From assembly GCA_002104945.1 (NCBI GenBank), contig MCFH01000049.1, forward strand, positions 124,001 to 188,000: a stretch of DNA of 64,000 nucleotides, given 5' to 3'. The DNA is from Piromyces finnis finn (taxonomy: Eukaryota; Fungi; Neocallimastigomycota). The notes under the pieces were generated by a model that did no database searches, was not told the origin of the DNA, and worked only from the letters and a program-made list of their open reading frames with translations. Each line of letters begins with the position of its first letter. Position 1 is the stretch's first letter. Shown piece after piece: positions 11,874 to 64,000 of the stretch. Made by a program: the position numbers and the translations under genes.

Positions 11874-13694
11874 TTATATTCTAATAAATAGTATTGTCAT
11901 CATTAATAATAAAATAGTGGATAATTCAAAGTTTATATTATTATATTGAGAATAGGTACTACTAGTATTTTCTATATCGTAGTCCTCTATCGCTTCACTA
12001 TAATAAAGAACGTTCATTCCTTCATAATCCATAATAACATTCATATATTCTTTTGAATGCTGATATTCTTTTGTATTTTCTTTACTTTTTCCAAAAGTTA
12101 ATCTTCCTTGTGCATATCTGTACTTTTCAGGAATACGATCAAACTTTTTTAAATAGTCAATTAACATATCATTTGATAATGCAATATTTGAAGAAATGGT
12201 CTTGGAATCAGAAAATACATAGCCATCCCCATGTTCAAGTAAGATATATGTATTTGCAGCTACATTATAACGACGTTTTGGATCGATGGGTTCACCATTC
12301 ACTAAAACATTATGAACTCTACGTTTGCCTGAAACTTTAACAAAGGCACTTCTCTCATCTAATTGAACCGTAGAATTAATCGTTGGATCAATACTATAGG
12401 TTAATCCAGATGTATGAAGAAATCCACTAATACCACCAGGATATTCTCTTGCACTCATTTCAAGGGCATCTAAAATAGTTTGACCTGGCATTTCAGAAAT
12501 ACCAACAAATGTCGTAAATGGAATAATAGTAAGGATATCATTGATAGTAATATTTCCTTTTTTTAGTGGTCCCCTTATACCTCCTGCATTACACAAAGAA
12601 ATATCTACTGGACCGTATTTTTCGGATTCTGAGAAAATAGCATCCGTTATTAAATTTGTTAAATTGGTTTCATTTTTTCCTAGAGCCCATGCTCCTTTAT
12701 CATCAACTATTCTTAAGTCAAAATCAGTTTTTGTTAAATATACATTTACTAATGCTTCATATTTACTCTTTATTTCTTCTAGGATTTTTGTTACTTTTTT
12801 ATCTTTTCCTTTTATATCCTCAGGGTCAATTAATTCTGTTTTTATATGACCATCTGTAGTTATAGTAACTTGCCCTATATGGGCAAATCTGGAACCTGAT
12901 CGAGTAAGTGGAACGTCTATACCTTCTATATTTTTTACCATTAATAAAGGTGTTGCTTGATGATTGTGCCCATCAATGAAAGCATCAATACCTTTGGTAT
13001 TTTGTATTACTACATTTGCTGTCCAAGGATCAGTGGTATTTACAACACCTCCTAAATGTCCAAGAGCAATAACATAATCTGCTCCGTTTTTTCTAGAATC
13101 ATCAACTGCTTTTTGTACAGACTCGTATAATTTTTTACCAGAAGGGTCTAAATCAAAATCATAAATATAATTACCATCACTATCCATAAATGATGATGGT
13201 TTAGATCTTACTAATGTATCAGGTGTACTAATTCCAACAAAAGCAACTTTAACATCTCCATAGGATATTATTTCATATGGTTCAAATACTAGTTTTCCAG
13301 TAATTAAATTTCGAAAATTACACGATACATAATTGCATGTAAGATTTTTAGATAATTGATTAAATTGATTCATTCCATAATCAAATTCATGATTTCCTAA
13401 AGTTACCAAATCATATGGTAAACTATTCATAATATCAATAATATAACTACCACGAGATATTACACCAATAGGTGCTCCTTGTATTGCATCACCAGCATCC
13501 ACTAATGATACATATGGTGTTTTTTTTTCAACTTCTTTTTTATAGTAACTTAATCCTGCATATCCCATATTATTGTCGAATGAACAATGTATATCATTGG
13601 TATATATAATTACAATATCATGATCTGGATTTTTTCCAAAACAAATATTAAATAAGAGTTGTATTATTAATAAAGTAAACAATATGACCTTCAT
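11874..13694 (-). CDS. Secreted or membrane-anchored 5'-nucleotidase (calcineurin-like metallophosphoesterase plus 5'-NT C domain), copy 1
   Basis: Intronless 606-aa ORF with signal peptide, TNDIH, DAGDAIQG, TLGNHEFDYG, GHLG, DGHNH, NAGGIR and a hydrophobic C-terminal tail. Confidence 0.93.
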   Translation of the reverse strand: MKVILFTLLIIQLLFNICFGKNPDHDIVIIYTNDIHCSFDNNMGYAGLSYYKKEVEKKTPYVSLVDAGDAIQGAPIGVISRGSYIIDIMNSLPYDLVTLGNHEFDYGMNQFNQLSKNLTCNYVSCNFRNLITGKLVFEPYEIISYGDVKVAFVGISTPDTLVRSKPSSFMDSDGNYIYDFDLDPSGKKLYESVQKAVDDSRKNGADYVIALGHLGGVVNTTDPWTANVVIQNTKGIDAFIDGHNHQATPLLMVKNIEGIDVPLTRSGSRFAHIGQVTITTDGHIKTELIDPEDIKGKDKKVTKILEEIKSKYEALVNVYLTKTDFDLRIVDDKGAWALGKNETNLTNLITDAIFSESEKYGPVDISLCNAGGIRGPLKKGNITINDILTIIPFTTFVGISEMPGQTILDALEMSAREYPGGISGFLHTSGLTYSIDPTINSTVQLDERSAFVKVSGKRRVHNVLVNGEPIDPKRRYNVAANTYILLEHGDGYVFSDSKTISSNIALSNDMLIDYLKKFDRIPEKYRYAQGRLTFGKSKENTKEYQHSKEYMNVIMDYEGMNVLYYSEAIEDYDIENTSSTYSQYNNINFELSTILLLMMTILFIRI

Positions 13695-14114: not shown

Positions 14115-16226
14115 TTATATTGTATTGTAGAATAATGTTAAAATAAATAGCATAAAAATTAAAAGTCTTAGTCTTTTATTATCATATATTGAATTAGCAT
14201 CGCTAATAATTTCTGAATGAGCAGAAATTTTATGATGAACCACAATAGTATAAATTCCTTCTTTTCTGGTTTCTGAAATAATATTAGAGTTCGATGATAG
14301 AGTAATATTTACCATATATGTAATACCGATTTCAGCTACACCTGATTTTTTTGCTACAAGTTTCAGTGTCTCGGATTGTTCATCAAAAATAAATTCGGCA
14401 ACGGTATCATTACTAGATTCTGGTATAACTTCAAAAGATAAATGTGTGATTTCTGAAATGGGTTCATTACCTCTATAAACTTTAAATAGAAATTCTTTTG
14501 TGGCATTCATTTCCATCATTTCATTCGAGGAAAGAATATCTAGGCCTTCAAATTTCATAATGAGATCCGTATTATTTTTTGATCGTTTATGTTCATTTCT
14601 ATTATTGTTATCTTTACTTTTTTCAAAAGTTAATCTTCCTTGTGAAAATCGATACTTTTCAGGAATACGATCAAACTTTTTTAAATATTCTATAAATAAA
14701 TCACTTTGTAAAGCGAAATTTGATTGAATAATCTTGGAATCAGAAAATGAATAACCATCTCCGTGTTCATATAAAATATAAGAATTCGAAGCAATATTAT
14801 AACGTCGTTTAGGATCGATAGGTTCACCATTTACTAAAACATTATAAACTCTACGTTTACCGGAAATTCCAATAAAAACATTTCTCTCATCTAATTGAAC
14901 CGTAGAATTAATCATTGGATCTACACTGTAGGTTAATCCTGATGTATGGAGAAGCCCACCATTGTTTTCAGGATATTTACTTGCACTCATTTCAAGAGCA
15001 TCTAAAATAGTTTGACCTGACATTTCAGAGATACTGACATAAGTAGCAAACGGTATAATAGTAAGGATATCATTGATCGTAATATTTCCTTTTTTAATTG
15101 ATCCTCTTATACTTCCTGCATTGCATAAAGAAATATCAACAGGTCCATACTTTTTGGATTCTGAAAGAATAGAATCGGCTACTAAATCTGTTAAATTAGT
15201 TTCATTTTTTCTTACAATCCACATTCCCTTTTCGTCAATTGCTTCAAAATCAAAATCAGTTTTTGTTAAATATACATTTATTGATGTTTCATAACTGTCT
15301 TTGATTTCTTTTATGATTTTTGTTACTTTCTGGTCTTTTTCTTTAATATCTACAGGATCAATCAATTCTGTTTTTATATGACCATCAGTGGTTATAGTAA
15401 CTTGTCCTATATAGGCAAATCTGGATCCTGATTGTGTAATTGGAACATCAATACCCTCTATGTTTTTTTGTGTGAATGAAGGAATAACTTCATGAGAATG
15501 TCCATCAATGAAGGCATCAATACCTTTGGTGTTTTGAACTACCATACTTGATGTCCAAGGCCCAGTAGCATCTACAACACCACCCAAATGTCCAAGAACA
15601 ATAACATAATCTGCTCCGTTTTTTCTAGAATCATCAACTGCTTTTTGTACGGAATCATACAACTTTTTACCAGAAGAGTCTAAATCAAAATCATAAATAT
15701 AATTGCCATTATTATTCATAAATGATGATGGTTTAGATTTTGTTATCGTTTCAGGGGTACATATTCCTATAAAAGCGACTTTTACATTTCCATAGGATAT
15801 TATTTTGTATGGTTCAAATACTAGTTTTCCAGTAATTAAATTTCGAAAATTACATGATATATAATCACATGTAAGGTTTTTAGATAATTGATAAAATTGA
15901 TTCATACCATAATCAAATTCATGATTTCCTGGAACTGCTAAATCATATGGTAGACTATTCATAATATCAATAATATAACTACCACGAGATATTACACCAA
16001 TAGGTGCTCCTTGCATTGCATCGCCAGCATCAACTAACGAGACATATGGTGTTTTTTTTCCAACTTTTTTTTTATAGTAACTTAATCCTGCATATCCAAT
16101 ATTATTATCAACGGCACAATGTACATCATTAGTATATATAATTACAATATCATGATCTGGATTTTTTCCAAAACATATATTAAACAACAGTTGTACTATT
16201 AATAAAGCAAATAATATGACCTTCAT
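14115..16226 (-). CDS. Secreted or membrane-anchored 5'-nucleotidase, copy 2, with an extra C-terminal domain
   Basis: Intronless 703-aa paralog of 11874-13694 with TNDVH, DAGDAMQG, PGNHEFDYG, DGHSH and NAGSIR. It has about 100 extra residues before the hydrophobic tail. Confidence 0.93.
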   Translation of the reverse strand: MKVILFALLIVQLLFNICFGKNPDHDIVIIYTNDVHCAVDNNIGYAGLSYYKKKVGKKTPYVSLVDAGDAMQGAPIGVISRGSYIIDIMNSLPYDLAVPGNHEFDYGMNQFYQLSKNLTCDYISCNFRNLITGKLVFEPYKIISYGNVKVAFIGICTPETITKSKPSSFMNNNGNYIYDFDLDSSGKKLYDSVQKAVDDSRKNGADYVIVLGHLGGVVDATGPWTSSMVVQNTKGIDAFIDGHSHEVIPSFTQKNIEGIDVPITQSGSRFAYIGQVTITTDGHIKTELIDPVDIKEKDQKVTKIIKEIKDSYETSINVYLTKTDFDFEAIDEKGMWIVRKNETNLTDLVADSILSESKKYGPVDISLCNAGSIRGSIKKGNITINDILTIIPFATYVSISEMSGQTILDALEMSASKYPENNGGLLHTSGLTYSVDPMINSTVQLDERNVFIGISGKRRVYNVLVNGEPIDPKRRYNIASNSYILYEHGDGYSFSDSKIIQSNFALQSDLFIEYLKKFDRIPEKYRFSQGRLTFEKSKDNNNRNEHKRSKNNTDLIMKFEGLDILSSNEMMEMNATKEFLFKVYRGNEPISEITHLSFEVIPESSNDTVAEFIFDEQSETLKLVAKKSGVAEIGITYMVNITLSSNSNIISETRKEGIYTIVVHHKISAHSEIISDANSIYDNKRLRLLIFMLFILTLFYNTI

Positions 16227-49966: not shown

Positions 49967-50333
49967 TTTGAAATCGTTGTTTTTTTTTTAGTTCTATTTT
50001 AGTTTTATTATTAGATATTATTTTCGAATATTAAATATTAAACAATATTTCTTGCTTTTAGGTCTCCTTTCATTTAAATGTATTTTACCATAAATATTCA
50101 TTATAATTTTATTGATGGGTTAAAAAAATTATTTTTTCTCATTTTATTAATTATTAATAATATGAATTTTTTTTGAAAAATATAAATTTCGCATGAGATT
50201 TTGAAAATTTTAAAACTTCATAAAACAATAAAATAATTATTAGTTCAATAATAAGTATTTTATTAAAACCCATTTTGTATAATAGTATATATATTTAAAG
50301 CCATTATTTATTGTAGAAATAAGCAAAAAAAAA

Positions 50334-53642: not shown

Positions 53643-54942
53643 ATATATTTATAATGAATTTAAATTTTTTGAAAAATTATTATACATTAATGAATTTGTA
53701 AAAACAAAAGAAAACAAATATTCTTGTATTTTTTTAATTGTTTAAATATATAAAAATAAAAATATTATTCCTTAATAATTAATATCAAAAAAAAATTATA
53801 ATAGTGAAAAAAAGAAAGGGTAGTTATTAAGTATTTGTAATGTAAAAATGATATATTATAGTATTATTTAAAAAATATTATAACAATGTATCTATATAAT
53901 AATTCAAGTATATAAATTTGAAAATTGTTATATTGTATTTTTAATTGTAAAAAAAAAAGAAAATAATAAAAAAAATAAAAGAATATTTATGAATATAAAA
54001 GTTGTTTTCATGAAAAATAACGATTTAGTAATATTTTTATTAAAATTTTTGTTCAACGGTCATTTCATTCTAAATGTTAATATTTTTAATTTCAATTATT
54101 ATTTTTTTTATCTTAACATAATTTTATGAAAAATGACTCTTTTATATTTTAAATTTCTAGAATTTAAAATAATACTGATGATGGTATTATAATGTTTTAA
54201 TCATTTGAAATAAAATTTTGAAAATAGAATGAAAAAAAAAAAAACGAAACTATAACAAAATTGTTAAAATATATATTTTGATATAACGATATTATATATT
54301 CATAAGAATATTCTTAGTATTTCAATCTTTATTTATTATTATATATCTTGACTTTATCGATATTACTATTATTAAAATTATTTCTTTTTCTTTTTAAAAA
54401 AATTAATAATAATGTTTTTTTTATTATTGTATGAATAATTGTTATATTTCAATAATTATATTTAATTTTTAATTGTAATAAAGATCATTCAATCTGTCAT
54501 TTTTTTCAAATGAATTAAACAAAATCATTACATATAATTATAATAGATTTTTAAAATAATTATATTTTAATATTCTGTGATATAAAATTTGAAAAAAAAG
54601 AAAATAATAATAACAATAATTATTATTAAAAAAATATTTATTGTATTCTTTCATTTTTTATAATTAATTTATCTAAAATTATAATTATTTATTTATTTAA
54701 ATAAATTTTTTAAATAAATTTATTGTTATATGATTTTCTAAAACTTTAATTTTTCGTGAAATATAAATTTCTTTTGAGATTTCGAAAATTTTTAAAACTT
54801 CAATAAACATAAAATAATTATTTCTACAATAATAACTATTTTATTAAAACCAAAAAAAATTGTATATAATTTATAATACATTATTATTTTTTATATTTGT
54901 AACTAAATAAGTAAAAATAAAAACTTGTAATATTTATTCAAA

Positions 54943-57099
54943 ATGTTTGCCAAGAAGCTTTTAAGGTATTCCCAAAAAAATGATAAACCTAAAAATTAAA
55001 AACTAAAATTTGAATAGAGTTGAATTTATAATCTATAATTGAAAATAATAAAAAAAGTTTTAATATTAATATTTAAATTATATATTTATTATTAGTGTTG
55101 TTAGTTGCTTATTTTTAGGTAGTCAATTAATTTCTGTTGCTAATGCCGATGCTAGTAAGTATAATAAAATAAAATAAAATAAATAAAAATAAAATAAAAT
55201 ATATTTTTGAAAAAATAATTTTAAATTCTAATGATATATTTGATAATAATTACTAATATAATAAATAGTTGAATTACCAGGTTGTAGTTTTGATATTTCT
55301 GGCTGTTCAGGTTCAATTGAAGCATCAAGTGAAGACACATTCTGTATTGGTACTGATGATGTAATTTATAAATATACTGATACTGAATGTAATGGAAAGT
55401 TAGAATCTGGTGTATATGTTTTTGATAAAGACACAAAGAAAATTCCATCATCAGTAGAAGGTGTAGATGAAAGTAAATTAGTAATGTATGATTGTGATTC
55501 TACTTGTGCTCAAATAAATGGTTATGCAAAAATTGGAAGTAGTTATTATAAAGTATTAAATGATGATAGTAGTAATGATGAAATAACACAATTTGATGAT
55601 GTAAGTAGTTATCTTGTTCATGACGGACAAAATGCTAAAGCTTGTAAAAATGATAGTGAATCATCAATTGAAGTTGATACTTCTGTTACAGGTAAACAAA
55701 AAATATATTTATATAAATATGATTTTATAAAAATAATTAATATATATTTTTAAAATTAAAAATATTAGATGAAGACTATTGTGTTGATAGTAATACTAGT
55801 AAAATTACTAAAAGAAAAGTTCAATACTGTACTGCAGGCGTTGAATGTGATGATTATTATAAATGTGTTAATGGTGAAAATTGTGAAAAAACAAATAATT
55901 CTTATCCTCGTGAGTTTTACTAATAAATTATTTAAATAATTAAATTTATTGAATTTCAAATAGTATAAATATAAAATTTTAACATATTTTTTTATTCATC
56001 TTATTTTTAATAGCAAGAGGAACTGGAGAACCAATTCCAACATGTAATCCTACTAGTACAGATGATGCAGTCTATTGTAAATATTTAAAGTTATCTAATT
56101 ATCTTTTATAAATTATATATAATAATTTTTAATATTTATTTTATTATATATATAATTTTAGGTGCCAGTGGCAGTGTTGTTAGCGGTGGAAACTTATACA
56201 CTTGCAGTGGAGAATCAGATGAAGCATGTACTCCTGATGAAAGCGTTTCAGGTTTAATTGTTAGTGCTGAAGACGACAATCTATACACATGTACAGAAGG
56301 TAAAGATTGTGAAATTACAGATATTTCAGGTTATCTTATTGATAGTAAAAGCAAATTATACAAATGTACAAGTGGTGCCGATTGTTCATTTAAAAATAGT
56401 AGTGGATATCTTATCAATCCTCAAGATCACAAGTTATACCAATGTACCGGTGGTGCAGATTGTGAAGAAAATAGTTCTATAATTGGTTATCTTGTTAATG
56501 CTATTACTAATGGCGATAGTGATCCTTATATTGAATGTGCCGCTACATCAACTGAAGGTGAACACGATTGTGATGTCATTGAACAACCTTCAGGTACTTG
56601 TACAAATGCAGGTGATTTAATATATATTACAAGTGGTGGTGTAGGAAGAAAAAGAAGTGTTTCATACAAAGTTTGTATTGACGATGAAACTTCAAATGCA
56701 GTTGGTGATGAAGGAAGTTACTTTGTTAAATCAGATGCCATTAATGTATTTACTGATAAGGCAGTTGCAGGTTATTTTAATGCAATTGATATTGATGATA
56801 AAGGAAATGTTGTTCTTAACACTGGTCAGTATATAAAATTGGAATATAAATTATAAAATATTATTTTTATCAATATATCAATCTATTAATATTTAAAAAA
56901 ATGTTTTTCAATTTAAATGTAATATAAAATAGTCAAGGATAAATACAAGTATGCTATTAATTATAAAATATATGCTAAAGGTGCAAGTGAAATCTGTCCA
57001 GAAGGTTCATTTAGTGAAAGTGCAAAAGAATTTACTTTAAAGGTAGTTGAAGGTGATGCAGTTAATTATTACGAAGAAGAAGCAACACAAGAAGAATAA
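54943..57099 (+). CDS. Secreted scaffoldin-like protein, copy A (7 exons, ~512 aa)
   Basis: Exons 54943-54965, 55096-55154, 55269-55691, 55769-55909, 56014-56076, 56162-56824 and 56933-57099 splice in frame. Signal peptide MFAKKLLSVVSCLFLGSQLISVANA is followed by GYLI...KLYxCTxGxDC repeats and GYLVNA...PYIEC. Confidence 0.85.
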
Positions 57100-58797
57100 G
57101 ATGAGTTGATGAATCTTAATTTTTAAAAGTAGAACTAAATAAAAATTTTTATGGATCATATACGTTTATTTTATTTAGTTTATTAATAATATAAAAAATA
57201 ATAATGTATAAATAGTAATGTAAAATATGTAATAAATATATATAAATTTATTTGTATATATAAAAGTATAAATTTATTATTATTAATAATAAAATGTTGT
57301 ATAATAATTAATATAACTGATTTTATTAAAAAATTATAGTTATCAAATATCATTTTTAATGAAAATACAATTATTAAAGTGTGATAAAAAGTGAAATACT
57401 TCAAATATATAAAATATAATTTGATAATGATTTATTAGTTAATATCTTTAATATTTCATTAATATTATTAACTTTTAAATTTTAATTATTACTTTAAAAA
57501 ATGATTTTTTTTTATTATAAAGAAAAATATATTAAATGTCAATTTCTATTCGTATAATTTGTAAAAACAAAAGAAAACAAATATTCTTGTATTTTTTTAA
57601 TTGTTTAAATATATAAAAATAAAAATCTTATTATTGAATAATTAATAGCAAGAAAAAAATTATAATAGTGAAAAAAAGAAAGGGTAGTTATTAAGTATTT
57701 GTAATGTAAAAATGATATATTATAGTATTATTTAAAAAATATTATAACAATGTATCTATTAATAATTCAATTATATATCCGAAAATTGTTATATTGTATT
57801 TTTAATTGTAAAAAAAAAGAAAACAATAAAAAAAATAAAAGAATATTTATGAATATAAAAGTTGTTTTCATTAAAAATAATGATTTAATGATATTTTTAT
57901 TAAAATTTTTGTTCAACGGTCATTTCATTCTAAATGTTAATATTTTTAATTTCAATTATTATTTTTTTATTTTAACGTAATTTTATGAAAATTACTCTTT
58001 AATATTTTAAATTTCTAGAATTTAAAATAATACTGATGGTGGTATTATAGAGTTTTAATCATTTGAAATAAAATTTTGAAAATAGAATAAAAAAAAAACG
58101 AAACTATAACAAAAATGTTAAAATATATATTTTGATATAACGATATTATATATCCATAAGAATATTCTTAGTATTTAATTTTTTTATTTAATATTATATA
58201 TCTTGACTTTATCGATATTACTATTATTAAAATTATTACTTTTTCTTTTTAAAAAAAATAATAATAATGTTTTTTTTATTATTGTATGAATAATTGTTAT
58301 ATTTCAATATTTATATTTATTTTTTAATTGTAATAAAGATCATTCAATCTGTCATTTTTTTCAAATGAATTAAACAAAATCATTACATATAATTATAATA
58401 GATTTTTAAAATAATTATATTTTAATATTCTGTGATATAAAATTTGAAAAAAAAGAAAATAATAATAACAATAATTATTATTAAAAAAATATTTATTGTA
58501 TTCTTTCATTTTTTATAATTAATTTATCTAAAATTATAATTATTAATTTATTTAAATAAATTTTTTAAATAAATTTATTGTTATATGATTTTCTAAAACT
58601 TTAATTTTTCGTGAAATATAAATTTCTTTTGAGATTTCGAAAATTTTTAAAACTTCAATAAACATAAAATAATTATTTCTACAATAATAACTATTTTATT
58701 AAAACCAAAAAAAATTGTATATAATTTATAATACATTATTATTTTTTATATTTGTAACTAAATAAGTAAAAATAAAAACTTGTAATATTTATTCAAA

Positions 58798-60963
58798 ATG
58801 TTTGCCAAGAAGCTTTTAAGGTATTCCCAAAAAAATGATAAACCTAAAAATTAAAAACTAAAATTTGAATAGAGTTGAATTTATAATCTATAATTGAAAA
58901 TAATAAAAAAAGTTTTAATATTAATATTTAAATTATATATTTATTATTAGTGTTGTTAGTTGCTTATTTTTAGGTAGTCAATTAATTTCTGTTGCTAATG
59001 CCGATGCTAGTAAGTATAATAAAATAAAATAAAATAAATAAAAATAAAATAAAATATATTTTTGAAAAAATAATTTTAAATTCTAATGTTATATTTGATA
59101 ATAATTATTGATATAATAAATAGTTACATTACCAGGTTGTGGTGCATTAGAAACTTCTGGCTGTTCAACTTCAATTACAGCATCAGCTGGAAACACATTC
59201 TGTATTGGTACTGATGATGTAATTTATAAATATACTAATACTGAATGTAATGGAAAGTTAAAACCTGGTGTATATGTTTTTGATAAAGAAACAAAGCAAA
59301 TTCCATCATCAGTAGAAGGTGTAGATGAAAGTAAATTAGTAATGTATGATTGTGATTCTACTTGTGCTCAAATAAATGGTTATGCAAAAATTGGGGATAG
59401 TTATTACAAAGTATTAAATGATGATGGTAATAATGAAGAAATAACAGAATTAACTGCTGGAAGTAGTTATCTTATTCATGAAGGAGAAAATGCTAAAGCT
59501 TGTAAATATGATGGTGATACATCATTAATTGAAGTTGATACTTCTGTTACAGGTAAACAAAAAATATATTTTATATAAATATGAATTTATAAATATAATT
59601 AATATATATATTTTTATAACAAAAAATATTTAGGTAAGGAATATTGTGTTGATCGTGGTACTATTAACACTAGTAAAATTACTGAAAGAAAAGTTCAATA
59701 CTGTGAAGATGTTGGATGTGAAGATTATTATACTTGTACTAATGGCGAATGTATAAAAACAACTAATTATTATCCTTGTAAGTTTTTTTAATAAATTATT
59801 TAAATAATTAAATTTAATGAATCTCAATTAGGATAAATATAAAAATTTTAACATATTTTTTTATTCATCTTATTATTTAATAGCAAGAGTTGATGAAGAA
59901 CAAATTCCAACATGTGATCCTACTAGTACAGATAATGCAGTCCATTGTAAATATTTAAAGTTTTCTAATTATCTTTTATAAATTATATATAATAATTTTT
60001 AATATTTATTTTATTATATATATAATTTTAGGTGCCAGTGGCAGTGTTGTTAGTGGTGGAATCTTATACACTTGTAATAAAGAATCAGGTAAAGCATGTA
60101 CTGCTGATGATAGCGTTACAGGTTTAATTGTTATTGCTGGAGACAACAAGCTATACCAATGTACAGAAGGTGAAGATTGTGAAGTTACCAATGTTTCAGG
60201 TTATCTTATTGATAGTAAAAACAAATTATACACATGTACAGGTGGTGTCGATTGTTCATTTAAAAATAGTAGTGGATATCTTATCAATCCTCAAGATCAC
60301 AAGTTATACCAATGTACCGGTGGTAAAGATTGTGAAGAAAATAGTTCTATAATTGGTTATCTTGTTAATGCTATTAATGGTGAAGGTAGTAATCCTTATA
60401 TTAAATGTGCCGCTACATCAACTGAAGGTGAACACGATTGTGATGTCATTGCTCAACCTTCAAATTCTTGTTCAACTGCAGGTGATTTAATATATATAAC
60501 AGGTGTTACAAGAAAAAGAAGTGGTTCATACGAAGTTTGTATTGATAATTCAACTTCAAAACCAGTTGGTGCTGAAGGAAGTTACTTTGTTAAATCAGAT
60601 GCCATTAATGTATTTACTGATAAGGCAGTTGCAGGTTATTTTAATGCAATTGATATTGATGATAAAGGAAATGTTGTTCTTAACACTGGTCAGTATATAA
60701 AATTGGAATATAAATTATAAAATATTATTTTTATCAATATATCAATCTATTAATATTTAAAAAAATGTTTTTCAATTTAAATGTAATATAAAATAGTCAA
60801 GGATAAATACAAGTATGCTATTAATTATAAAATATATGCTAAAGGTGCAAGTGAAATCTGTCCAGAAGGTTCATTTAGTGAAAGTGCAAAAGAATTTACT
60901 TTAAAGGTAGTTGAAGGTGATGCAGTTAATTATTACGAAGAAGAAGCAACACAAGAAGAATAA
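58798..60963 (+). CDS. Secreted scaffoldin-like protein, copy B (7 exons)
   Basis: Same exon structure as copy A (exon 3 is 59124-59552, exon 4 is 59634-59777), with stop at 60961-60963. Confidence 0.85.
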
Positions 60964-61564
60964 GATGAGTTGATGAATCTTAATTTTTAAAAGTAGAACT
61001 AAATAAAAATTTTTATGGATCATATACGTTTATTTTATTTAGTTTATTAATAATATAAAAAATAATAATGTATAAATAGTAATGTAAAATATGTAATAAA
61101 TATATAAAAATTTATTTATATATATAAAAGTATAAATTTATTATTATTAATAATAAAATGTTGTATAATAATTAATATAACTGATTTTATTAAAATATTG
61201 TAGTTAAAATACAATTATTAAAGTGTGATAAAAAGTGAAATACTTCAAAAATATAAAATATAATTTGATAATGATTTATTAGTTAATATCTTTAATATTT
61301 CATTAATATTATTAACTTTTAATTTTTAATTATTATTTTAAAAAATGACTTTTTTATTATAAAGAAAAATACATTAAATATCAATTTCTATTCGTATAAT
61401 TTATAAAAATAAAAAAATAACAATTTATTTAAAATATATTTTGTTATTTATTGTAGAAAATTAATGAAAACATTATATCATGAATATTATACATTAATTT
61501 TGGGTTAGTTATATTATGATATTTTTATTTTTTTTTGAATTTTCGAAATAATATAAATATCAAT

Positions 61565-61635
61565 TGAAATTTCGAAAAAGTAAAAACTCCAATAAACAAT
61601 AAAATAATTATTTTATATAATAACTATTTTATTTA
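61565..61635 (+). promoter_or_regulatory. Conserved upstream module shared by five scaffoldin-like loci
   Basis: Consensus TGA(A/G)ATTTCGAAAA...AA(C)TTCAATAAACAATAAAATAATTAT...ATAATAACTATTTTATT occurs at 46673, 50194, 54775, 58630 and 61565, 140-185 bp upstream of the ATG where an ATG exists. Confidence 0.6.
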
Positions 61636-61749
61636 AATATAAATATTGTATAATAGTGTATATTCATAAAAAAACTTTATATATTTAAGTCTTTTTTTAT
61701 AATAAATTTGTAAATTATTTTTAAATAAAAATTATTTTTTTAAGTTAAA

Positions 61750-63592
61750 ATGTTCGCCAAAAAGTTATTATGGTAATTTCAAAAAAATTATTTCTATAAA
61801 GAGAGCTAAAAAAAAATTATACTAAAAATTTAAAATTTTTTATGAATAATTTATATTTAGTGTTGTTGCCTCTTTATTTGTTGGTATTCAATTAGTCAAT
61901 GCTGAAAGTAAGAATATTATCAAGTATATAGTTTAAATTGTAATAAAAATTATAAGTATTAACTTAATCTTTATTTTTATAATAGCAATTACCCCTTGTG
62001 GTAGTGGTTCATACACTAGTCCTGCTGATTGTACTACAGGTGTTATTGATAATTATTGTACAAAAGGAGAATATATTTTTGGTGTTGTAAGTGGTGAAAC
62101 TTCATGTGTTGATGTTATTAAAAATGAAGTTGCTGTATTTGAAGGAAACAGTAAATTAGATTTATCTACAGGTGAAATCGCAAATGTAAGTGATGTCAAA
62201 GTTTTTGATTGTGATAAAGCAGGTAAATGTACTGAAACATTTGGATATATCAAAGTTGATACAGATTACTATGAAGTACCAAACGGTGGAAGTGTCGCTA
62301 AATTAGAATCAAGTGATATGACCACTAAATCTAGTGGTAAATTGTATACTGGTGGTTTACTTTATGTAGATGAAGTAGATGTTCACGCCATTGATATTAA
62401 TACTGGAGATGGAAACTATTATGTTCTTAAGAATTCTGATAGTGTATTCAGTGGTTCTGTTGGTGATGTTGTTGTAAAATCTGGAACTAATGCTTTAACT
62501 TTTGTATCTTTAACCTCAACTTCAAGTTATCTTGTAAAAGATAATGCAGGAGAAATTGCATCAACTGCTGGTGATACTATTGTTATTAAAGGTAGTGATT
62601 ATTCCATTGATACAAGTATTAATGGAAATGACTATTGTGTTGATGATAAAATGCAAGTTTGGGAAAGAAAAGATGGTTTATGTAAATCATATATTGTAGA
62701 TAGCGAAGATTGTTCATTTTATTACGGATGTGGATCTGGAGAAAATTGTGTAAAATCGGACAATAATATGGATCCAAGAGCACAACAACAAGTAGATTGT
62801 ATTCCAAATGCTGAAAATAGTAATGATTGTAATGGCTATTACCTTACTAACAGTGAAAATAATGCTTTAATAAAATCCACAGGAGATGGTACTTATAATT
62901 TATGGAATTGTAGTACTGGCAGATGTGACGATGAAACTAATTCCCATCCAATAGGTTATTTGAAAAATGCAGGTACTCCCAGTGATTACCCATACATTGA
63001 ATGTAATTTAGAAAAATGTATAATTGCCACTATTGCCGAAAGTAATACTGGTTGTGTTGATTCAGGCCCAACAACTGGACAAGTCACCTATGGAGGTTTA
63101 TATAAAAGTAATAGTAATTACAAACTTTGCAAAGTTTACCAAACCGCTACTCCTTCTAATAATGAAATTATTACCAGTGAAGATGGTGTAGGAAAATACT
63201 TTATTGATATTGGTACTAAGAGCATATTAGGATTACCTGTTAAGAATGATCATTTCATTGCCATTGATATTGATGGGGAAAATGGAAATATAAAGATTGT
63301 CAACGGTTAGTAAAAAAAATGGAAAAGTAAAATAAATATAATATTTCAAATAAATTATAATATATAATTTATTTTTTACAATTTTAAAAAATAATATATA
63401 GATAATGTCAGATATAGATATACTCTTAATGGTGAATATTTAATTCATGAAAGAAGTACTGCAAAGGGTGAAACTAGTGGTGGTCAAATATGTGAAAGTG
63501 GAGTAACTCCATTTGAATATATTTTAAATCAATGGGATACTATTGAAGCAGGAGGCAATGAAGTAAATGCCAACTACTATATTCAAGAATAA
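61750..63592 (+). CDS. Secreted scaffoldin-like protein (4 exons)
   Basis: Mini-exon MFAKKLL (from 61750), signal exon (~61861-61907), large exon (~61986-63305: AITPCGSG...NGYYL...GYLKNAG...PYIECN..C) and last exon 63402-63592. Confidence 0.8.
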
Positions 63593-64000
63593 TAAGAAAA
63601 TTAAATTAATATTAATGTACGAATAGTAAAATATAATTCATTTAATATTATTTCGTATTTATTAAATTCTACGATAACTATTGTATAAAAAAATGAATTA
63701 GAAATTATATAGTAAAGAATTAAGTATATTAATATTTAAGTTTTTTTTAATAATTTTATTGTAAGTATTTTATTAAAAAAAATAAAAGTTATTTACATAA
63801 ATGTAATTTTAATTTTCTTTTTGATTATTTGTATCATTCAAATTGAAATAAAGATGAATTTTATTAATTGAAAAAATTAAAATATTCATTTATAAAGCTG
63901 AATTAATAAAAGATGTTGAATAATAGAATAGATAGTAAATTAATAGAATAATTGATGAAATAGTAATAATAAATTAAAATTATTTTTATTTATATCTGCA

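Follow-up and report, generated by a model that had tools for sequence, protein, structure and literature searches.

Accelerated, probably adaptive divergence of the core of two tandem scaffoldin-like genes in Piromyces finnis

Introduction

Can the coding exons of a duplicated gene pair diverge faster than the introns that separate them, and if so, what drives the difference? This question is raised by two neighbouring genes, here called A and B, in a 64,000-nucleotide stretch of DNA from the anaerobic gut fungus Piromyces finnis (the window; contig MCFH01000049.1, G000:C177:124001-188000; positions without a contig name are counted from its first letter). The window belongs to an assembly of 56.46 Mb in 232 contigs with about 19% GC and short spliceosomal introns. 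The original prediction, made from the letters of the window alone, described A and B as scaffoldin-like twins whose middle exons had changed faster than their introns, and offered diversifying selection or exon-targeted gene conversion as the cause.

Fungal scaffoldins of the ScaA type are repeat-rich, non-catalytic proteins that bind dockerins (PMC8262932, PMC7015840). The family spans a wide range of sizes, with and without anchors, and is unrelated in sequence to the bacterial scaffoldins (PMC8262932). Reports of dockerin binding are confined to a ScaA fragment (PMC8262932, citing its reference 10). The partner-binding surface of the fungal cellulosome is still undefined.

Identical ends and a divergent core

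A and B form a tandem duplication with a start-to-start spacing of 3855-3870 bp, as given by a repeat search of the window, and are 93.5% identical overall (Table 1). Splice sites were read off the sequence for A and carried to B by global alignment. Each gene has seven exons, GT-AG borders at every intron, no internal stop and 28 Cys codons, and introns 2 to 6 are all in phase 1. Both models agree letter for letter with deposited P. finnis proteins.

Divergence between the copies is a mosaic. Exon 1, intron 1, exon 2, intron 6 and exon 7 do not differ at all, and intron 5 differs at one of 85 bases. Values of 2.6%, 6.5% and 6.7% were obtained for introns 2, 3 and 4, and of 9.0%, 16.3%, 14.3% and 8.5% for exons 3, 4, 5 and 6. 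Per segment, the 5′ flank differs by 4.3% and the 3′ flank by 2.1%, the latter being identical for the first 143 bases past the stop codon. Beyond the identical tract, the 5′ spacer differs by 4.1% over 53745-54464, or by 7.4% with the first 100 bases, which align poorly, counted in. Introns 3 and 4, the outer 5′ flank and the synonymous divergence (dS) by the NG86 method (0.066) all lie within about 4-7%.

Two difference-free runs of 544 bp (54690-55234) and 535 bp (56708-57243) bound the divergent core, whereas the longest such run among 20000 permutations of the differences is 217 bp. As these runs include promoter-proximal DNA, untranslated regions (UTRs) and introns, constraint cannot account for them, and their pattern indicates two recent gene-conversion tracts. 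The core that they enclose differs at 125 of 1175 sites in exons (10.6%) and at 15 of 294 in introns (5.1%; Fisher p=0.0027).

Several parts of the original prediction can be judged from this mosaic. Tandem twins with identical outer segments are borne out by the per-segment values, as is the single difference in intron 5. That the exons diverged faster than their own introns holds for the core as a whole, but introns 3 and 4 reach 6.5-6.7% and the excess is only about two-fold. Gene conversion is indeed seen, but as homogenisation of the gene ends rather than in the exon-targeted form proposed.

Replacements between fixed cysteines

The core carries 94 amino acid substitutions and six indel events, every one of whole codons, in agreement with the dense, mostly amino-acid-changing substitutions and codon indels described earlier for exons 3-6; the peptide variants quoted there are all present in the translations. 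Polar residues are exchanged for polar ones in 77 substitutions and charge is altered in 45. The net charge of B exceeds that of A by 16 units, so that B is less acidic (isoelectric point 4.42 versus 4.15 for A). The Cys scaffold is kept, as had been claimed: all 28 Cys columns are common to A and B, and 23 of the 26 core Tyr columns are conserved. In the repeated modules of exon 6, variation is found at the x positions of LYxC, TxG and GxDC and in the residues that follow the second Cys; L, Y, C, G, D and SGYLI do not vary.

Both copies have changed, and at positions that vary within the family, because at the sites that distinguish A from B three outgroup sequences (gene D of the window and the related proteins P0007 and P0019) agree with A about as often as with B, and in most cases with neither. 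For the same reason, polarising changes with these outgroups was uninformative, most sites fitting neither copy. Libraries of 1.8 and 5.8 billion proteins and the genome itself yielded no close orthologue and no further close paralogue, only A, B and distant relatives.

Replacement changes exceed the neutral expectation

Rates were compared over the 387 aligned codons of the core, which hold 112.8 non-synonymous and 15.2 synonymous differences. Base composition is a confound in this comparison. GC content is 33% in the exons, 8-12% in non-coding DNA and 9% at third codon positions (GC3), and in non-coding DNA differences are 3-5 times more frequent at G/C sites than at A/T sites. As a neutral calibration, the substitution spectrum of the genes' own unconverted non-coding DNA was applied to each codon, and the expected numbers were set against those observed. 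This spectrum predicts 11-17 synonymous and 51-67 non-synonymous differences. The ratio of observed to expected non-synonymous differences (N/EN) is 2.06 (bootstrap 95% confidence interval (CI) 1.45-3.02), or 1.89 (CI 1.33-2.83) with strand-symmetrised rates and splice sites left out, and none of 2000 bootstrap replicates gave a value of 1 or less. Synonymous sites act like non-coding DNA, and only 4 of 115 four-fold degenerate sites differ (3.5%). Division of N/EN by the corresponding synonymous ratio (S/ES) gives a borderline 1.76 (CI 1.02-3.40).

Classical estimates of the ratio of non-synonymous to synonymous divergence (dN/dS, omega) depend strongly on the method. For the core, omega is 2.05 by NG86, 2.75 by LWL85, 0.81 by YN00 and 1.00 by maximum likelihood (ML); an MG94-type fit gives 1.54 (likelihood ratio test (LRT) against 1, p=0.13) and a GY94-F3x4 fit 0.87. 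With GC3 at 9%, codon-frequency-weighted models push dS to about twice the intron divergence. In the comparison of dN/dS with intron divergence that the original prediction proposed, exons exceed introns, and omega ranges from 0.81 to 2.75.

A pairwise analogue of the M2a versus M1a comparison gave LRT statistics of 14.7 (p=6e-4, MG-type) and 7.6 (p=0.02, GY-type), and the mixture model places 14-16% of codons in a class with an omega of 7-10. This test leans on codons with two or three changes, of which 23 were observed and 13 expected.

A control pair and a second array

Two intronless genes for secreted 5′-nucleotidases, arranged in tandem in the same window, served as a control (Table 1). 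The pair has 78% protein identity, a composition similar to that of A/B and, at 0.118, the same dN, but 115 synonymous differences versus 15 in A/B. Estimates of its omega by the various methods span 0.07-0.34, the calibrated value being 0.29, and the pair is under ordinary purifying selection. The behaviour of the methods in this genome is thus normal, and it is A/B that stands out.

The pattern of A and B is repeated in a second array, which was reached by a genome search with a large, distant relative as query. It consists of four tandem units, each of about 5.05 kb (G000:C197:207487-227632), that encode scaffoldin-like genes akin to gene U, which lies upstream of A in the window. From unit to unit, AT-rich spacer windows are 94-100% identical and coding windows 72-92%. 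In the six pairs that the four units form, with about 680 codons per pair, dN is 0.11-0.22 and NG86 dS 0.04-0.12; non-coding divergence is 1.5-14.6% in introns and 2.1-2.8% in intergenic DNA. Omega is 1.8-2.5 by NG86 and 0.8-1.66 by ML, and the intron-calibrated values are 1.55-2.40, every bootstrap CI lying above 1.

Near-duplicate DNA of this region occurs elsewhere in the assembly. Contig C120 (16,965 bp) is, over its whole length, 99.4% identical to C197:207461-223719 and represents a haplotig or else a segmental duplication of very recent origin.

Explanations for the divergent core

We favour, with moderate confidence, an accelerated and probably adaptive diversification of the mature core on a fixed Cys scaffold, with ends that have been converted. 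A and B stem from the recent tandem duplication of a small secreted member of the scaffoldin family, and recent gene conversion has equalised both ends of the copies, from the promoter to intron 2 and from the end of exon 6 to the 3′UTR. In the core between them, amino acid changes and indels of whole codons have built up about twice as fast as expected under neutrality, and they fall on polar, often charged positions amid invariant Cys, Gly and Tyr. The driving force was most likely positive (diversifying) selection for different binding surfaces after duplication; the pattern is reminiscent of toxin and receptor multigene families, whose mature exons evolve fast next to conserved introns, UTRs and signal peptides. 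The variable sites may lie at the protein surface, and binding, for instance to dockerins, could be the trait under selection. The variable-binding or antigenic-variation repertoire suggested by the original prediction is a speculative reading of the divergence pattern itself.

Selection is the best-supported cause, though not proven. N/EN, the mixture model, the control pair and the second array all support the diversifying selection of the original prediction; a gene-wide omega significantly above 1 is the part that did not emerge, be it with MG94 (p=0.13), GY94, YN00 or ML. Further points also weigh against adaptive change. With strand-symmetrised rates, N/EN over S/ES falls to 1.37 (CI 0.88-2.64). 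Adjacent double changes are enriched in non-coding DNA, too (5 pairs among 44 differences), so that multi-nucleotide mutation could inflate the mixture test. The calibration rests on about 15 synonymous and 15-44 non-coding differences only. The six C197 pairs are non-independent, the units being conversion mosaics in which, for instance, u1 and u3 are 100% identical over about 600 columns; such mosaics yield false positives in site-model tests. As no close orthologue was found, the tests are confined to pairwise comparisons. Finally, an AlphaFold2 model of mostly short strands, built from a four-sequence alignment, reached a confidence score (pLDDT) of 41, too poor to place the variable sites.

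The alternative that survives best, possible but in our view unlikely, is relaxed constraint without positive selection. One or both of the redundant copies would drift, and the greater mutability of exons, which are richer in GC, together with clustered multi-nucleotide mutations would produce the exon excess. The higher mutability of G/C sites, the difference in GC content between exons and non-coding DNA, codon-model omega values of 0.8-1.5 that do not differ significantly from 1 and the enrichment of adjacent differences outside the exons fit this account. However, drift cannot exceed neutrality, and N/EN remains at 1.9-2.06 after correction for composition, with no replicate at or below 1. 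Both copies have kept their reading frames, splice sites and 28 Cys, all six indels are in frame, A and B have changed about equally, and the same excess is found in the C197 array.

An old duplication under concerted evolution appears improbable. Here conversion would have erased neutral differences and reset the introns, and selection would have preserved old replacements. The two clear tracts at the gene ends are what such a process leaves behind, intron 5 sits in an identical run of 91 bp, and the C197 spacers are uniformly 2-3% divergent as compared to 10-20% in the gene bodies. In the core, however, replacements are on average about 10 bases apart, yet four-fold sites differ by only 3.5%. 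At this spacing, clearing synonymous sites while sparing the replacement sites next to them is beyond conversion tracts that extend over tens to hundreds of bases. Moreover, introns 3 and 4, the outer 5′ flank and NG86 dS (6.6%) agree at roughly 4-7%.

We give equally little credence to a templated, exon-restricted diversification, in which micro-conversion from internal repeats or paralogues (segment switching) would act only where donors exist, that is, in exons. Its best argument is clustering, as seen in the surplus of codons with two or three changes (23 versus 13 expected), in 31 adjacent pairs and in several short patches that are wholly replaced. In B relative to A, the LYxC and GxDC codons of exon-6 repeats 1-3 look swapped between repeats, and repeats 1 and 3 are 77% identical in B and 70% in A. 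Retained ancestral states explain the same matches, however, most differences lie outside the repeats, and the genome holds no close donor, only A, B and distant paralogues.

An assembly artefact, with two alleles or haplotypes of one gene laid in tandem, is highly improbable: the copies are 93.5% identical and the assembly does hold near-duplicate contigs such as C120 and C197 (99.4%), but the unit junction occurs three times, at graded levels of divergence, indels distinguish the spacers, the other apparent haplotig (C120) is a separate contig rather than a tandem copy, and related genes form tandem arrays at other sites of the genome.

Repeat-induced mutation of a RIP-like kind was also considered and rejected. 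Transversions make up 46% of the exon differences, and A<->G and C<->T exchanges stand at 54 to 14. Hypermutable G/C sites are, moreover, already accounted for in the composition-corrected test.

Relationship of A and B to the scaffoldin family

The label scaffoldin-like given in the original prediction is supported by a database name and by weak but real similarity to large repeat proteins. The record of ORX43939.1 (A) is titled "hypothetical protein BCR36DRAFT_415295 [Piromyces finnis]", and its UniRef name, found by a search with exon 6 of A, is "Scaffoldin". This exon matches repeat proteins of 1093-1524 amino acids with phmmer E=2.7e-8 and 2.4e-6, values that are significant though weak. 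A weak BLASTP match (E=2e-4) over the repeat modules links A to an open frame of 5654 amino acids in the same genome. This frame (G000:C185:342243-343370) consists of Gly-Tyr/Cys repeat modules and is probably a giant ScaA-type scaffoldin. A and B themselves contain about four clear modules, in which the hairpin-like LYxC-GxDC-GYL pattern is repeated. Taken together, the sequence comparisons support the placement of A and B as small, anchorless, secreted members of the fungal scaffoldin family, distinct from ScaA itself.

Relatives of A are few: B, two proteins of 437-478 amino acids from metagenomic or transcript contigs, which share the signal peptide and the C-terminal domain with A/B, and the few repeat proteins of 1093-1524 amino acids. 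The signal peptide, predicted by eye, has a KK n-region, a hydrophobic core and an A-N-A site before residue 26, and is conserved in D, P0007 and P0019. Over residues 1-25 (MFAKK..L..LF.G.QL) it is about 70-90% identical among P0001, P0018, P0007, P0019 and gene D, compared to only about 30-37% for the mature protein among distant family members, a contrast reminiscent of toxin families. The C-terminus of A/B is an acidic tail without a hydrophobic stretch, and thus no C-terminal membrane anchor was found. In Pfam, no family matched the full protein at E<=0.01 and no exon match at E<=1 passed its cut-off; solved structures include no sequence relative of A/B, and the ESM Atlas gave no usable match or model for the protein.

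Paralogue cluster and other features of the window

A and B belong to a cluster of paralogues on the same strand that also comprises U (about 50.3-53.64 kb) and D. The unit junction occurs after U, A and B with graded divergence, the third, diverged copy lying at 61350-61489. The gene D model was read from the sequence and translates without internal stop. It has one long exon, 61986-63305, in place of exons 3-6, so that introns 3-5 of A/B must have been gained or lost within the family.

About 100-200 nt upstream of the start codons of U, A, B and D lies a block that is 67-80% identical across these distant paralogues, in surrounding AT-rich DNA that cannot be aligned. With its TTCGAA-like motifs, it is a candidate for a shared cis-regulatory element. 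The segment 46673-46999 matches 61565-61911 at 75%, a stretch of gene D with promoter, exon 1 and intron sequence; a fifth family member probably starts near 46.7-46.9 kb.

Outside the cluster, the segment pairs 17913-18253/26390-26727 and 18728-19113/27023-27408 are 95-96% identical at a distance of about 8.4 kb and represent either a further young duplication or a dispersed repeat. Another pair, 31459-31931/34018-34490, is 73% identical.

Table 1. Positions of the tandem genes, their conserved and variable segments, and other features of the window
Feature	Position	Strand	Basis or content
Tandem unit 1 (spacer and gene A)	53645..57507	+	End-to-end alignment with 57508-61351
Tandem unit 2 (spacer and gene B)	57508..61351	+	Partner of unit 1
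Gene A, 512 amino acids	54943..57099	+	Translation identical to ORX43939.1 (P0001)
Gene A exons	54943-54965, 55096-55154, 55269-55691, 55769-55909, 56014-56076, 56162-56824, 56933-57099	+	
Gene B, 513 amino acids	58798..60963	+	Translation identical to P0018, BCR36DRAFT_415296
Gene B exons	58798-58820, 58951-59009, 59124-59552, 59634-59777, 59884-59946, 60032-60688, 60797-60963	+	
Identical tract 1, 544 bp	54691..55233 (partner 58546-59088)	+	Promoter-proximal DNA, 5′UTR, exon 1 (signal peptide), intron 1, exon 2, most of intron 2
Variable core of A	55234..56708 (partner 59089-60572)	+	End of intron 2, exons 3-5, most of exon 6
Identical tract 2, 535 bp	56709..57242 (partner 60573-61106)	+	Last 116 bases of exon 6, intron 6, exon 7, start of 3′ flank
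Three internal repeats of 75-78 nt in exon 6 of A	56258..56467 (B partner 60128-60337)	+	Each encodes a LYxC-TxGxDC ... SGYLI module
Gene D, nearest other paralogue	61750..63594; exons 61750-61772, 61861-61907, 61986-63305, 63402-63594	+	Profile match, E=1.7e-39
Conserved promoter block, about 110 nt	50169-50270, 54750-54851, 58605-58706, 61540-61641	+	Repeat search and four-way alignment
Tandem pair of intronless secreted 5′-nucleotidase genes (control)	11874-13694, 14115-16226	-	Pfam PF02872, PF00149

Implications

Young paralogues that share a fixed Cys/Gly/Tyr scaffold but contain about 15% fast codons point to the likeliest contact positions. A versus B and the four C197 units are natural variant sets for dockerin-binding tests, and the practical gain would be a small set of residues with which to engineer synthetic fungal cellulosomes. 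If selection is confirmed, these scaffoldins would be under diversifying pressure rather than merely structural, and their role would have to be modelled differently. If it is not, the locus nonetheless illustrates clearly how gene conversion can act as a mosaic in a genome of extreme AT content, and how strongly dN/dS varies with the method at such base composition.

A broader version of the adaptive account, which we consider distinctly doubtful, is that the small scaffoldin-like genes of anaerobic fungi form tandem arrays under active diversification, which would yield a repertoire of surfaces for docking or recognition. Promoters, signal peptides, introns and tails would be kept alike by conversion, while selection, possibly together with templated micro-conversion between the LYxC-GxDC-GYL repeats, would vary the binding modules. 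Were this true, assembly of the fungal cellulosome or interactions with other rumen microbes would be subject to an arms race or a specificity code.

Comparison with known systems

Like ScaA, A and B have a signal peptide and Gly-Tyr ... Cys ... Cys modules which, by eye, resemble those of the published P. finnis ScaA fragment. In contrast to ScaA, which exceeds 500 kDa, A has 512 amino acids, few repeats and an acidic C-terminus instead of a hydrophobic anchor. With the scaffoldins of bacterial cellulosomes they share the name and a proposed role as a non-catalytic docking platform; unlike these, A/B have no Pfam cohesin match.

The closest precedent for the mode of divergence comes from snake venoms, where phospholipase A2 (PLA2) and three-finger toxin genes have accelerated mature-protein exons and undergo 'ASSET' segment switching (PMC2474615, PMC2711939). 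Patterns of this type are known from toxin families and appear to be unreported for anaerobic-fungal scaffoldins within the papers searched. A and B differ from the venom families in kingdom and fold and have no known predator-prey target; their excess is about two-fold and rests on one pair and one further array, and part of the contrast between conserved and variable regions stems from demonstrable conversion of the gene ends. As in the venom families, secreted proteins built on a Cys scaffold are encoded by tandem or multigene arrays, the Cys framework is fixed while changes alter charge, the mature exons vary more than introns, UTRs and signal peptide, and short exon segments are replaced wholesale.

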